Assembly (NCBI GenBank): GCA_028826165.1
Contig: JAPDFW010000085.1
Span: 278,679-342,678, forward strand
Length of the DNA: 64,000 bases
Source: Anaeramoeba ignava BMAN
Taxonomy: Eukaryota; Protista; Anaeramoebae
Direction of reading: 5' to 3'
The notes below the pieces were generated by a model. The model had not been told where the DNA came from and did not search any database. It was given only the letters and a program-made list of their open reading frames with translations. Position numbers and translations under genes: made by a program. Below are positions 41,588 through 47,021 of this stretch, piece after piece (within the stretch, counting starts at the first letter, position 1; every line of letters begins with the position of its first letter).

Positions 41588-43204
41588 CTAAAATTTGGAA
41601 TGAAAATTTTCATTTAAAGCTCGATTCAAAACATCTTCTAATTTATCCAAAGGAATTCTCATATCACTACCCTTTGAATTAGCATAAACTCTCCAATATT
41701 CACAACCAGAAGAATGAGAAAACCACCAAAAAATAGGTCTTGAACCAAGTTTTGCAGAAGTTTGAAACTCAATAATTTTTGGATGAGATAAAGAGAATAT
41801 TATGTTATAAAAAGAACCACCATGAGCACCAATTACAGCCTTTGCATTGTTGAAAAAATTAACAAGTTTTTTTAAATCGGAATAATCACGATGAGAAAAA
41901 TACTTGAATTTGTCGCCATATCTTTTCTTTAGATAATCTTCAACTTCGTTTGAATTCAAAACATTTCTTCCATTTCTTGAATTTATTCTTGGCAAATAAA
42001 TAATATATTCAGGATTTGGATTTCGGATTTCGAGATCGGAATAAGTTTCCAAAATGGATTTGACAAGAAAATTTTTGGATTCATAAATTAAACGCGGATT
42101 CCAAATTGTTGCTCCACAAGCCATAAGGAATTCATCAGCATCATATTTGGTTCCTGGTTGATAATATTCAATTTCCACATTGAATTCTTTTTTGACAATA
42201 TCCCAAAAAGAATAAACAATTTGATCAACCGGCCTGAGAACAAGAAGCGTGTATCCTTTGTCTTTGATATAAGGTCTTGCTTGTATAATAGGGCACAAAC
42301 CATGATCAATCCAGTGCTGAAAGTAATTGGATTGAGCTGGTGTTATAATTGCTAATTTTTTGAAATGTTTCCCATTTCCCGGCGTTAGAGATTGAAATTA
42401 CTCATTCTTGTTGTTTCCAAACACTCGGGAATTCTGTCAAAACTGAAATCCTTAACAAAAGTCATATTCCCTGTTGTGTAATATGGCTCAGTCATACTCA
42501 TTTCATGTTTTTCACAATCTCCTTGTGCCATTGGTGGCTTATCGTTTTCACCACAAAAATGCCGATGCGATTCCTCGTCTAAAGTATGTGGTGCTTGAAG
42601 ATAAAATGATCCAAATTTTATATGATATAATATTTCCTTTTCAGAAATTATATGTTTTGATACTCTTAAATGCTCATCATAATTGTCATATCGTATAAAC
42701 TTTGTATCTTCTTCAGTGTGATAAAAATATGGGTTCTCATAGTAATATAAATTCATGTCATATAGATTTGAAAAGGGATCATTTATATCCATTGATAAAT
42801 TTTTTTGATTTAAAACTTCATTTTTAAATTGAGTAAATTCATTTTCAATTTGAATTAATTTTTTGGAAACTTTTTGCAGTTCTTGATCTTTTTGGGATAA
42901 TTTGATTTGTAGTGAATCAATAGTGATAACTGGGGATTCTTCGTTATCTTCTGTTTTTGCTATTTTGAAAATTCAAAAAAAGCAAGAAAGAAAAGAAAAG
43001 AAATTTTTTTTTAAAAATTAAGAAAAAAAAATAATTTTTTCTTTTGAAATATTAAATTTTACCATCTGAAAAAGAATAAAAAGTTATAAATAAAATGACA
43101 GAAAAAGTCAAAACGAATACTGCAAAAAAAAGAAAAAGCTTGTTTCTAAAGATTCTTTTGAAACCTAAACCTCCTTCAAATTGAAAAACTTTTTTTGCAT
43201 CCAT
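41588..43204 (-). CDS. Glycosyltransferase family 61 (DUF563) type II membrane protein; intron 43062-42960; frame break at 42401-42352
   Basis: N-terminal TM anchor. Motifs NYFQHW.D, IIYL.R..R...N..EV, F..A..VIGAHG...N.IF and IIEF. Confidence 0.8.
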
Positions 43205-43229: not shown

Positions 43230-43333
43230 TTTTTTTTGTAAAAGTTTTGGAAAATGAAAAATGAAAAAAAATGAAAAATGAAAAATGTTTTTTTGGATTT
43301 GAAAAAGCAAAAAAAAAAATATAATTAAATTCA
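43230..43333. repeat. ~104-bp direct repeat, left copy (GT61 upstream region)
   Basis: TAAAAGTTTTGGAAAATG...GTTTTTTTGGATTTGAAAAAGC...TATAATTAAATTCA matches 45222-45326 with about 4 differences. Confidence 0.95.
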
Positions 43334-43340
43334 AAAAAAT

Positions 43341-45221
43341 TTAATCAAGTTTCCCAAAACGAACTCGCCAATCTTTGATAATATTAACTCGAAAAGAAGA
43401 TCCACTTTCTCGATAAACAGTTGTTAATCTTTGTGAACCATCAACTTGTAAAGGAGCTAATAAAGTACCATTATCACTTAATAAATTCTTATAATCTTGA
43501 TTAATTTCAGTAACATATCCTCCAAATAAAATTGCATCAAATGGTCCTTTATCTTTAATTGGTTGAACATCTTCAATACTTTCATTGTAAATCCAATCCA
43601 TAATATTAGAAAGTGGAGTGTTATGTTGGCAAATTCCTTGTGCCTTTTCTAAAGCTTCGTTTTGTGAGGAATACACAACAATTTTTCCATTCAATCCAAC
43701 AATTTGAGCTGCAATGCTTTGAATATATCCTCCTTTGGCTCCAACAAATAAAACTGAAAATCCTGGTGATAAATGAACAAGTGATAATTGTGCTCCAACA
43801 ATTTCAGGTGAACTTGTATTCGATTGTGTTGAAGCCTTCATTGCGCGTGAATATGTATATGCTAATAAAATCTCACTTGATTGAAGTTGTGAAGTTTGGT
43901 TCCATCCTTTTCTTCTTTGTGAAAATGTGAATAAATGTCTTGGAACTACTTCAATTGCTTGCAATATGGATGAATTGAAAATGTTCCGAAAATTTGATTT
44001 GGATTTTAAATCCCCAATCATGTTGAATCTGAGTTTCTTTGTCTCTTCAGTATCAGTATCATCTTTCCATTTTATTCCAATAGTTTTAACTGGAACAATT
44101 TTACTTTTAACTTGATTGGAAATTTCTGTTGTTGTTGTGATTTTGGGTGATTTTGGTGGACTTTGTTCATAATTAGGTTTCATGTTCATTTTAGAATGTA
44201 ATGTTAGGTCTTTCATTCCACTTTCAATTTCCATTTTCTTGAAACATTTCTCAAATTCATCCAAATTAGGTCGATTTTCTTGTTCATGATCCCATCCTTT
44301 TTTGATTAATTCTTTCAATTCGTTCATATCATTTGGGAAATCTTTTTCAATATCAGGTCTTTCTCCTTTCATAATTTTCAAAACAAGTCTTCCAACTGAA
44401 ATTCCTTTATAAGGTTCTTGTTTGGAAAACAATTGATAAAAAATGATTGATAAACTGTAAACATCACATGAACTTCCATAAATAGTTCCTTCATCCAATA
44501 ATTCTGGTGCTGTATAAGCAATAGTTCCAGCAACTGTTGTGTTTCTATTAACTGTTTGAAGAACTCTTGAAATTCCAAAATCAGTTATTTTTGGATTTCC
44601 TTTTGTAAGTAAAATATTTGCTGGTTTTAAATCTCGATGTGCAATTTTTTTTCTGTGAAGAAACTTCAATCCATTAATTATTCCTAATCCAATAGTGATT
44701 GATTCATGTTTTGTTAAATTTGGAATTGATTCTAATAAACTTCCTTGTTCTGCAAATTCCATTATGATTCCTGATGTATTTTCAAATTTCACAATTCCAT
44801 AAATTTGAATAATATTTGGATGAGAAAGGCCGATTGATAAATTGATTTCATCTTTTAGTTGTTTTTCAGCATTTTCATCACCACCAACTCTTAATTTTTT
44901 AACTACAATATTTTGATTTCCCCATTTTGCTTTGAAAATATCAGCTGAAGCTCCTGTTTGGAAAGGATTTGGATCAATTATAATTTCTTCCAAAGGAATA
45001 ACAGGAACATCACTTATTCTTTCTCCAATTTCTTCAGCAATTTGTAAAAGTGAAATATTTGTAATGAATTTTGATTTATCCAATCTTAAACGACAAAAAG
45101 GACAAGTTTTCACATTTTCAACACATTTTTCACAAATTGAATGACCATTTGAACATATTATAATTGGTTTTCTTTTTGAATCAAATCTTTCAAAACAAAT
45201 TGCGCATTTGACTGTTTCCAT
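43341..45221 (-). CDS. RING finger + TKL-type protein kinase + degenerate PIMT/PCMT domain fusion
   Basis: RING: CAIC..C..GHSIC..C...CPFCR. Kinase: VVKK, HRDLKPANILL, DFG, GT.AY.APE, DVYS. PIMT-like: AI..VPRHLF, L.PG..VL.VG..GGY, GPFDAI, L...G.L.APL. Confidence 0.85.
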   Translation of the reverse strand: METVKCAICFERFDSKRKPIIICSNGHSICEKCVENVKTCPFCRLRLDKSKFITNISLLQIAEEIGERISDVPVIPLEEIIIDPNPFQTGASADIFKAKWGNQNIVVKKLRVGGDENAEKQLKDEINLSIGLSHPNIIQIYGIVKFENTSGIIMEFAEQGSLLESIPNLTKHESITIGLGIINGLKFLHRKKIAHRDLKPANILLTKGNPKITDFGISRVLQTVNRNTTVAGTIAYTAPELLDEGTIYGSSCDVYSLSIIFYQLFSKQEPYKGISVGRLVLKIMKGERPDIEKDFPNDMNELKELIKKGWDHEQENRPNLDEFEKCFKKMEIESGMKDLTLHSKMNMKPNYEQSPPKSPKITTTTEISNQVKSKIVPVKTIGIKWKDDTDTEETKKLRFNMIGDLKSKSNFRNIFNSSILQAIEVVPRHLFTFSQRRKGWNQTSQLQSSEILLAYTYSRAMKASTQSNTSSPEIVGAQLSLVHLSPGFSVLFVGAKGGYIQSIAAQIVGLNGKIVVYSSQNEALEKAQGICQHNTPLSNIMDWIYNESIEDVQPIKDKGPFDAILFGGYVTEINQDYKNLLSDNGTLLAPLQVDGSQRLTTVYRESGSSFRVNIIKDWRVRFGKLD

Positions 45222-45326
45222 TTTTTTTTTATAAAAGTTTTTGGAAAATGAAAAAAGAAAAAAAATGAAAAATGAAAAATGTTTTTTTGGATTTGAAAAA
45301 GCAAAAAAAAAATATAATTAAATTCA
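45222..45326. repeat. ~104-bp direct repeat, right copy (abuts kinase ATG)
   Basis: Near-identical to 43230-43333. Contains minus-strand TCATTTT elements. Confidence 0.95.
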
Positions 45327-45371: not shown

Positions 45372-47021
45372 ATGTATCATTTGCTAAGCAAAAAAAAACA
45401 AGAGGAAGAAGAAAGGCAAAAACTTAAAAGAGAAGAAATGATAAATTACTCTCCAGAATTAGCAATTTATAAAAACAAAGGAGTTTTAAAAATTAAAGAA
45501 AATGAACTAAAAAGATTAAAAGGAGAAAATTATTTAAGATCTAATCAAAATAACAGAATTCCATCAATAGAAGAAAATTTGATAATAAATAATCTACCTC
45601 CAGAAAGTAATTTGATAAATAAATCATTTCAATTAATCAAAAATTAATCCAAAATCATAATTCAAAAAATGGGAATAGTTTTAATAATGATTTGTGAATA
45701 TTTATCACCTGGAGAATTTGGTATATTTGGAATGACTTGCGCTTTTTTTCGTGAAATTTATGATGATCAAGAAACATGGAGAAAAATAGCAAAATCCTAT
45801 AATGAATTTTTTATTTGTGATTATTATGAATTCAACAATGATATTTATCGACATGATTTATTTGGATTTCAAACTCCCATTCATCAAGAAATGGAAATAA
45901 TCAAAACAGAAAAGCAAAAAGAAGATTTCCCCAATTTAAGTAGAAAACATTTTGAGAAGTGGAATGAAAAACGAGAAAAAAGATTGAAACAATATTTCAA
46001 TAATGGGAAAATTGATGAATCAACAATGAAGGATGAGCATTGGAACAGAAGATTGCCAGTTTTAAACTCAACAGAAGAAGAAAGAGTTGAGTATATCAAT
46101 TTACTAGAAAATCCTAAAGAAGAGATGCTTGAAAAAGGAAGAAAAATTTATGAATTATTTCTGGAAGAGAAAAAAAGAAGAACAAATTTAGAGAAATATT
46201 CTGAAAGACAAAAAGAATTGAGGCATGTCAAAAAAAAAGAGGAGCGATTTTTTATCTTTTTTGGGATTTTATTTCTTCTTGGATTTTCAGTTTACATAAT
46301 TTTAATTACTCTCAAAATTGAAAGGAAAATTGAATCAAAATTAAGTTATCTGAGTATCTCAACTTTGATTCCTCTTTTTGGATTATTGATTGTTTTGGTG
46401 TATGATTTAATTTTGAAGGTGATGGCAAGAAAAATGAAGTATTATTTGGAGGAAGATTTGTATTTTGTTTCGTTGTCATTTTGTTTATTGGTATTTATTG
46501 GAATTGTGTTAATTGGATTGAAAGTGGATCATTTTATGAAATGCTCTTGGTTGATTGTTTTGATTCCTTTTATACTTTATTCCGCTATTTTTTCGATTTT
46601 TCTTTTTGTTTACATCCTGATTTTGTATTGGAAACAGAGAAAAGAATTACTATTTATTGCTCTACTTTGCTTTTGGTTTATTCCATTTTTGGTTTTTTTA
46701 GGATTAAAACTTGATGGGAAAATCAAATGGAATTATGGAATTGTTTTTATTCCTTTATTTCTTCAAGTTTTATCGTTAGTAGCTAGTTTTTTCTTAACAA
46801 ATTTCTGGGGGAATGTTGGAGGTTTTATAACCAAAATGGGAATATTTTTGATTTTATTTTTTTGGATCATCTTTTTGATTATTTTTATTATTTATTTGGA
46901 AAAAGATGGAATTTATAATATTTATTATCCTTTTATTCCAATTTATATTTTTTTTGGTATTTCTGATATTTTTGGTTGTATTTCGGTTATATTAGGGATT
47001 ATTTTACCAGATTTTCAATAA
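45372..47021 (+). CDS. F-box + TMEM185/TMEM60-like multi-pass membrane protein; intron 45607-45678
   Basis: Splicing restores the F-box INNLPPEILIMICEYLS....FGMTC..F......W. TM repeats LKVD....SWLIVLIP and LKLDG.I.W.Y..VFIPL. Confidence 0.75.

Follow-up and report, generated by a model that had tools for sequence, protein, structure and literature searches.

A RING-kinase protein of Anaeramoeba ignava ends in a PIMT-fold domain with degenerate cofactor motifs that is probably a non-catalytic sensor module

We examined a 64 kb stretch of the genome of Anaeramoeba ignava BMAN, a free-living anaerobic amoeba (assembly GCA_028826165.1, contig JAPDFW010000085.1, positions 278,679 to 342,678; this whole stretch is referred to as the window), for a gene whose product joins a RING finger and a protein kinase to a C-terminal domain with the fold of protein L-isoaspartyl methyltransferases (PIMTs). 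The C-terminal domain should no longer bind the methyltransferase cofactor, and we consider it probable that it works as a recognition or sensor module. The window is very AT-rich, at about 20 % G+C. The gene was identified at 43341..45221 on the reverse strand, as are all of its features given below, and comprises a single intronless open reading frame (ORF) running from ATG to stop and encoding 626 amino acids (aa) plus the stop. A protein identical over all 626 aa has been deposited in NCBI and UniRef, indicating that the deposited gene model and the ORF are the same, and a Pfam scan of this protein returned three modules, namely RING, Pkinase and PCMT. These data agree with an earlier note on the window, which had proposed that one intronless ORF joins a RING, a kinase and a C-terminal domain. 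The predicted gene product is an intact three-module signalling protein.

The RING finger spans residues 4-47 (45081..45212), as delineated by Pfam, motif positions and an alignment of 25 family members. All eight zinc ligands of the C3HC4 type are present with canonical spacing (C6, C9, C23, H27, C30, C33, C40 and C43; nucleotides 45093-45206), and the Pfam Sina_RING/zf-RING_5 match covers residues 5-44. Within the alignment C23, H27, C30, C33 and C40 were invariant and C43 nearly so. RING fingers that bind ubiquitin-conjugating enzymes (E2) usually carry a hydrophobic residue, a proline and a basic 'linchpin' at defined positions. Here Ile8 follows the first RING cysteine, Pro41 the seventh ligand and Arg44 the eighth, and by analogy with RINGs in general these residues would occupy the E2-contact and linchpin positions. 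The kinase domain, of TKL/MAP3K-like type, spans residues 86-335 (44217..44966) according to Pfam, comparison with the PDB and the family alignment. The Pfam Pkinase match covered residues 90-322 (161 bits), and the nearest solved kinases were TAK1, DLK and ZAK (~1e-28). Its catalytic set is complete and conserved in the family, comprising K108, E125, HRDLKPAN (195-202), DFG (214-216) and APE (238-240); the HRD motif, which the earlier note had reported as intact together with DFG and APE, lies at 195-197. Judged by these residues, both the RING and the kinase look catalytically competent. The combination of a ubiquitin-ligase zinc finger with a TKL/MAP3K-type kinase in one chain is also known from Arabidopsis KEG, a RING-kinase-ankyrin-HERC2-like ubiquitin ligase (E3), and from mammalian MEKK1, which joins a PHD/RING-like finger to a MAP3K. 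In contrast to these, the A. ignava protein has a different C-terminal recognition module and displays neither ankyrin nor HERC2-like repeats in Pfam.

A linker of residues 336-384 (44070..44216) connects the kinase to the C-terminal domain, as defined by alignment (31 % mean identity) and by an AlphaFold2 model of the full-length protein. The model displayed disorder at residues 340-355 and a confidently predicted short strand and helix at 360-372. P377 and W385, at the end of the linker and the start of the following domain, were invariant in the 25-member alignment. The full-length model of 626 aa attained a pTM of 0.80, suggestive of a defined packing arrangement through which the three domains could communicate.

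The C-terminal domain comprises residues 385-626 (43344..44069) and was characterized by Pfam, PDB comparison, AlphaFold2 modelling and phylogeny. Its start at W385 (nucleotide 44069) is only a few codons from the position of about 44050 that had been proposed. Pfam PCMT (PF01135) matched residues 454-613 with 56 bits against a cut-off of 20.3, and the significant sequence matches in the PDB were PIMTs only. A model of residues 381-626 built from 30 family sequences reached a pLDDT of 91.9 and a pTM of 0.90. When this model was compared with the PDB by Foldseek, ranks 1-17 were all occupied by PIMTs and PCMTD1 (E 3e-15 to 7e-10; TM score on the query 0.64-0.77), with TM scores on the target of up to 0.91 and of 0.78-0.91 for PIMTs of similar size. 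The match to the PCMTD1 structure 9oma had an E value of 7e-10 and a query TM score of 0.68. Generic class I methyltransferases appeared only below rank 17 (E ~6e-6, TM ~0.4), with E values weaker by four orders of magnitude. This modelling and structure search had been suggested in the earlier note as a check on its assignment of the domain to the PIMT type; together with the PDB sequence matches it bore that assignment out, at a level well beyond chance. Membership of another methyltransferase class was ruled out by the same ranking. The domain differs from canonical PIMTs in possessing an N-terminal extension with an invariant tryptophan and a C-terminal motif of its own.

The cofactor and substrate motifs were compared by aligning the domain to the two canonical PIMTs encoded in the A. 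ignava genome and to solved PIMTs. Motif I for S-adenosylmethionine (AdoMet) is degenerate and reads VLFVGAKGGY (residues 490-499; 43725..43754), as the earlier note had observed. The canonical L-[DE]-[VI]-G-x-G-x-G is represented by L-F-V-G-A-K-G-G, such that the acidic residue has become Phe492 and the second, central glycine has become Lys496; the segment F-V-G-A-K-G-G (residues 492-498) does not match the AdoMet motif [DE]-x-G-x-G-x-G. This lysine was invariant across alignments of the clade to which the domain belongs, with the exception of one UBA fusion (P0146, see below). A second alteration concerns post-motif I, IVVYSSQ (residues 514-520; 43662..43682). In PIMTs an acidic residue ends strand beta2 and contacts the ribose hydroxyls. 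Every solved PIMT aligned had Glu or Asp at this position, whereas the window protein has Ser, and the clade as a whole Ser, Thr or Ala. Both cofactor contacts were lost in all of the approximately 40 aligned members, whilst the two canonical A. ignava PIMTs retain them. According to what is known of class I methyltransferases, AdoMet binding should thus be lost in the domain, as the acid and glycine of motif I and the acid of beta2 are all missing. With both hallmarks gone, the domain, hereafter termed pseudo-PIMT, most likely does not methylate anything.

The substrate-side Ser-Pro motif, by contrast, has been kept. Pre-motif I, TSSPE (residues 469-473; 43803..43817), also noted earlier, is the counterpart of canonical T-I-S-A-P-H, whose Ser contacts the substrate and which lines the substrate groove in real PIMTs. 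The canonical Ser and Pro are retained and the His is replaced by an invariant Glu473. In the fusion family S470, S471 and E473 were invariant and P472 nearly invariant, and the first of these serines was invariant in archaeal members too. The pattern S-S-x-P itself falls within the natural range of PIMTs, as the solved enzyme 1dl5 has S-S-Q-P. Invariant residues of the pseudo-PIMT gather at the former active site and comprise the pre-motif I Ser, G-K-G-Y of motif I, the Gly of motif II, the Pro of motif III and a C-terminal F-G.

A word-indexed protein search identified approximately 35 proteins with both kinase and PCMT domains, most of which also carry a RING. About 30 of these were colinear RING-kinase-pseudoPIMT proteins from A. 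flamelloides, Skoliomonas sp. TZLM1-RC and uncultured protists represented by metagenome contigs, including contigs of 68-76 kb. The sequences labelled 'Eukaryota sp. TZLM1-RC' derive from an isolate of the anaerobic metamonad Skoliomonas (PMC11603281). Of the metagenome contigs with family members, two long ones have a eukaryotic appearance, as Tim17, WW, BTB and split phosphatase genes lie close by. The closest named relatives of the window protein were other A. ignava proteins (89 % and 84 % identity), followed by those of A. flamelloides, and identity across the family in this search was 32-38 % over 97-100 % of the length. Common to all fusion members were VPRHLF, [NS]-E-S-S-P-E-I-I-G, V-L-[LF]-V-G-x-K-G-G-Y, the lack of a beta2 acid, F-[HD]-x-[IV]-I-x-C-G, A-P-V and a conserved C-terminal F-G or F-E. 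Mean pairwise identity was 0.48 for the pseudo-PIMT, 0.50 for the kinase, 0.46 for the RING and 0.40 and 0.31 for the two linkers. The pseudo-PIMT is evidently under purifying selection, to judge from these alignments, since it is conserved as well as the kinase and better than the linkers. The earlier note had envisaged an independent, single-chain reader. The three-domain single chain is real, but it is not an isolated case, and the notion of an architecture unique to A. ignava was rejected given its occurrence in several protist lineages. One further RING-kinase of 944 aa (P0023), 38 % identical to the RING-kinase portion, is labelled as originating from the ostracod Cyprideis torosa and may stem from a protist contaminant in that assembly.

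Within the A. ignava genome the RING-kinase portion recurs as a cassette, with at least 35 near-full-length copies of 39-49 % identity, often in tandem arrays (e.g. C128:45832-70608, C61:328949-389528 and C71-C73). Many copies are only ~340 aa long and tailless, whilst others carry SH3, RhoGAP/MyTH4 or ankyrin tails. The cassette is a lineage-specific expansion of putative E3-kinases. In the cassette tree the PCMT-less A. ignava copies formed one lineage-specific clade and the pseudo-PIMT-bearing lineages fell on an unresolved base; this topology would allow the three-part protein to have come first, without establishing that it did. Two colinear tandem paralogues of the window gene, 83-89 % identical to it, were identified on contig 62 at 164165-168110 (L010 and L007), and both are disrupted. 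In one, 13 scrambled codons covering the ATP-binding Lys contain two in-frame stops; the other has a stop within its RING and is frameshifted at several points. GenBank models the two as truncated 'ulk3' proteins, 512 and 491 aa long. These paralogues could be decaying copies or assembly errors. If the disruptions are genuine, only the window gene remains intact. Apart from the two canonical PIMT genes, whose cofactor motifs are intact, the genome contains a 771-aa open frame (C104:396183-397829; L003, L011) with two PCMT-like domains, between which lies low-complexity sequence with a His run. Its glycine motifs, ..IIGSGTG.. and ..DIGCGCG.., look canonical, and this tandem-PIMT protein is a different one from the window protein.

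The distribution of the pseudo-PIMT beyond this family was examined with the C-terminal domain alone as query. An exhaustive profile search returned 47 cluster representatives at E ≤ 1e-30, and a local hidden Markov model (HMM) of the domain matched ~80 sequences at 65 bits or more, many of them fragments, with canonical PIMTs of intact motif I appearing from ~70 bits downwards. Clade members scored 175-360 bits against ~65 bits for canonical PIMTs. They share a motif set of VPRH, [ES]-S-[SA]-P, G-x-K-G-G-Y, no beta2 acid, T-P-[FYL] and a C-terminal F-G, and we refer to them as the 'GAKGGY' clade. A tree inferred with IQ-TREE placed all pseudo-PIMTs in one clade with support of 100/100 against canonical PIMTs and on a long branch. 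Prokaryotic fusions clustered loosely within it (83/68) and the eukaryotic lineages formed an unresolved base, so that no direction of transfer between prokaryotes and eukaryotes can be read from the tree.

Fusion partners were assigned by local HMMs and Pfam, and the module stood C-terminal to its partner. In addition to RING-kinase, the partners comprised TIR domains (P0129, P0131 and P0157), a bpMoxR-type AAA+ ATPase (P0140), two UBA domains (P0146, the member in which the motif I Lys has been lost), long coiled coils (P0133, P0134, P0138 and P0141) and a RING without a kinase (P0165). TIR, MoxR AAA+ and coiled-coil heads were found on archaeal or prokaryotic contigs, and RING-alone or UBA heads on eukaryote-like or unplaced contigs. 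On this evidence the pseudo-PIMT looks like a module that is portable across proteins. The MoxR fusion and one coiled-coil fusion reside on prokaryote-style contigs of one Promethearchaeota (Asgard) metagenome-assembled genome (MAG), and another coiled-coil fusion resides in a Promethearchaeum sp. MAG, giving two Asgard MAG carriers; two further fusions were found in other NCBI MAGs with archaeal-looking neighbours. A scan of the Asgard phylum identified two clear carriers and one weak carrier among 400 genomes, and given such sporadic carriage the idea of an Asgard-wide eukaryote-like trait was rejected. A search of the ESM Atlas, which covers clusters of at least 50 members, returned canonical PIMT clusters only and is uninformative given that size limit.

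The genomic context of one TIR fusion was suggestive of conflict biology. At L017:532-7351 a TIR-pseudoPIMT gene adjoins a ParE toxin gene, and a nearby gene for a Zc3h12a/NYN RNase overlaps that of an 831-aa SMC-like ATPase matching the PbeC, DndD and LmuB models. This locus looks like a defence island, and TIR or NYN genes were also present near two Asgard loci. A PADLOC scan matched the TIR heads to the TIR_SAVED and ThsB models; it contained no model for the pseudo-PIMT module, and its matches of the kinase to defence kinases were generic. A separate feature of two archaeal-type genomes is a metallophosphoesterase gene of the purple-acid-phosphatase type, found as the same-strand neighbour of a coiled-coil-pseudoPIMT gene (L020:1390-2982 and L032:6123-7613). 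As the two pseudo-PIMTs fall in different subclades, this may reflect a functional pairing rather than plain synteny.

The above results indicated that a PIMT fold has been kept, that its invariant residues lie at the old active site, that both cofactor contacts have been lost and that the output heads vary. On these grounds we consider the pseudo-PIMT to be probably a non-catalytic recognition or sensor module that steers the RING and kinase outputs. The remodelled active-site cleft would bind a peptide or another, probably anionic, ligand, and binding would either select targets for the RING and kinase or switch both of them on. In the A. ignava protein the outputs would be ubiquitination and phosphorylation, whilst in other proteins the same sensor might be read out through TIR, MoxR AAA+, coiled-coil, RING-alone or UBA heads. 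Several observations weigh against this interpretation. Motif I is not absolutely invariant in active methyltransferases. In place of the post-motif III segment ..VPL, which helps to hold the peptide in real PIMTs, the domain has another conserved motif, F-G-[KPE], and the old peptide groove may therefore not be preserved. The full-length pTM of 0.80 was built on just 25 aligned sequences, and the defence-island setting was found at only a few prokaryotic loci. The earlier note had inferred a damage reader. The fusions that join the module to TIR, MoxR AAA+ or coiled coils on archaeal or prokaryotic contigs, with one such gene lying in an apparent defence island, point to a general sensor or recognition module rather than specifically to a damage reader in proteostasis.

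A special case of the sensor explanation, with the ligand named, is that the pseudo-PIMT reads L-isoaspartate (isoAsp) damage without a cofactor and feeds the RING and kinase in cis, as a single-chain counterpart of the cullin-5 RING ligase complex CRL5-PCMTD1. We regard this as possible, though on the unlikely side. The fold is specific to PIMTs, the groove motif Ser-Ser-Pro is kept within the range of PIMT variation noted for 1dl5, and RING, UBA and MoxR-type AAA+ partners fit protein quality control and the ubiquitin system. There is also a precedent, in that the non-methylating PIMT fold of PCMTD1 reads isoAsp for an E3 (PMC12590147). The invariant Lys in the old AdoMet site, together with the new invariant Glu473, could replace the cofactor. 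However, PCMTD1, the only experimentally studied reader of this kind, has retained its AdoMet motifs and requires bound AdoMet to recognize isoAsp (PMC12590147), whereas both motifs are gone here. This weakens the isoAsp proposal, and the analogy to PCMTD1 drawn in the earlier note cannot be transferred directly. The replacement of ..VPL, the retention of two normal PIMT genes for repair, and the TIR fusions and defence-island setting, which suit conflict or signalling better than repair, all count in the same direction.

PCMTD1 and PCMTD2, metazoan PIMT-domain substrate receptors of cullin-5 RING ligases, are among the closest known counterparts. The likeness consists of a non-methylating PIMT-fold domain coupled to ubiquitin ligation. 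PCMTD1 recruits a separate cullin-RBX2 through its SOCS-box region, whereas the A. ignava protein carries a RING in the same chain and adds a kinase, and its pseudo-PIMT lacks the AdoMet motifs and belongs to a separate clade. No C-terminal SOCS-box or BC-box region, the part of such receptors that recruits Elongin BC and cullin-5, was found in it by Pfam, the chain ending with the PIMT fold at residue 626. By analogy the A. ignava protein would work most like PCMTD1, yet it is not a member of the PCMTD1 family, as both defining features, the AdoMet motifs and the SOCS-box, are absent.

Alternatively, a metabolite, a signal derived from a nucleotide or some other small anion might bind in the remodelled cofactor pocket, and the domain would act as an allosteric switch in the manner of STING or SAVED for TIR effectors. 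In keeping with this, the Rossmann-type glycine loop has gained an invariant Lys and the ribose-binding acid has been lost, conservation is centred on the pocket, and a constant C-terminal module is combined with TIR, AAA+ or kinase heads. The position of one TIR fusion beside ParE and the Lamassu/Pbe-like pair, with TIR or NYN genes near two other loci, is likewise in keeping with such a switch. Bacterial sensor-effector fusions of this design include TIR-STING and TIR-SAVED. Prokaryotic relatives of the pseudo-PIMT resemble these in having an N-terminal TIR and a C-terminal ligand-type domain, one of them in a defence island, but differ in that the C-terminal domain is derived from a PIMT and no partner cyclase or signal synthase was seen at the loci. 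There is no candidate ligand and no signal-generating enzyme consistently adjacent, PADLOC provides no model for the module, and the retained Ser-Ser-Pro of the peptide groove would be left unexplained. We judge a small-molecule switch to be unlikely.

It is doubtful that the pseudo-PIMT has no external ligand and serves as an intramolecular regulator or as an oligomerization or adaptor surface, setting the geometry of kinase and RING or pairing module-bearing proteins. The full-length pTM of 0.80 and the ordered linker element are consistent with such a role, and a PIMT fold can serve within a complex, as demonstrated by a solved structure among the PDB matches (8qby_t), in which one subunit of Paracoccus complex I is a PIMT-fold chain. 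The occurrence of one domain on different effectors likewise resembles adaptor domains. The invariant residues are, however, former active-site residues rather than a surface patch, and the fused heads are too dissimilar for one common interface.

Continued methyltransferase activity, with AdoMet bound in an unusual way, is very unlikely. The fold can still be recognized in its entirety, as can motifs II and III, and some active enzymes tolerate variation in motif I, but the loss of two independent cofactor contacts throughout the ~40 aligned members, the long branch apart from canonical PIMTs and a score of 46 bits against the NCBIfam PIMT equivalog cut-offs of 159-188 all speak against it. 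The pseudo-PIMT resembles canonical PIMT/PCMT1 (EC 2.1.1.77) in fold, motif order and the pre-motif I Ser and Pro, and differs from it in having Phe for the motif I acid, Lys for the central Gly and Ser for the beta2 acid, and in being fused to a RING and a kinase. By motif I, post-motif I and the equivalog thresholds it does not classify as a PIMT enzyme. A misassembled junction or a run-on gene model joining separate genes can be set aside with near certainty, as the same domain order occurs in one ORF in ~30 independent assemblies (including A. flamelloides, Skoliomonas sp. TZLM1-RC and metagenome contigs) and in two colinear paralogues on another contig (contig 62), with the family-invariant P377 and W385 lying at the junction.

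A literature search of incomplete coverage found no description of either the architecture or the clade, which is absence of evidence only; an eLife paper on conflict systems mentions neither PCMT nor any methyltransferase. The architecture had not been recognized in the earlier note either, and the 'GAKGGY' pseudo-PIMTs apparently constitute a well-defined, conserved pseudoenzyme clade that has not been described. If the sensor interpretation is true, this would be the second, independent case after PCMTD1 of a non-methylating PIMT fold acting as an E3 reader. It would also be the more radical one, given that the cofactor site is gone, that one chain carries both the ligase finger and a kinase, and that the module recurs with TIR, AAA+ and UBA heads across the divide between archaea and eukaryotes. 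Should the ligand be isoAsp, the protein would offer a simple single-protein system in which to study the sensing of spontaneous protein damage; should it be something else, the pseudo-PIMT would define a sensor domain of a new kind in conflict or signalling systems. A broader and tentative proposal, more likely wrong than right, is that the module is an old, cofactor-independent sensor of damage or danger, in which the Lys replaces AdoMet and which recognizes isoaspartyl or carboxylate peptides or a small anionic messenger, deployed both in archaeal immune-type proteins and in eukaryotic RING-kinases. Such modules would make up a new class of pseudoenzyme receptors, and a single chain would lead from protein damage or infection to both ubiquitination and phosphorylation.

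Two further genes flank the RING-kinase-pseudoPIMT gene in the window. A glycosyltransferase-61 (GT61) fragment lies at 41588-42298 on the reverse strand, and the forward strand encodes, at 45669-47021, a multi-pass membrane protein of 450 aa whose N-terminus weakly resembles an F-box; no functional link of either to the gene was apparent. An A/T-rich direct repeat of 89 nucleotides was also identified, with a downstream copy at 43230..43318, for which no strand is assigned, and a partner copy, 93 % identical, at 45224-45312. The pair flanks the ORF almost exactly, from stop to start, and may represent a duplicated intergenic or promoter segment that is a relic of tandem duplication.

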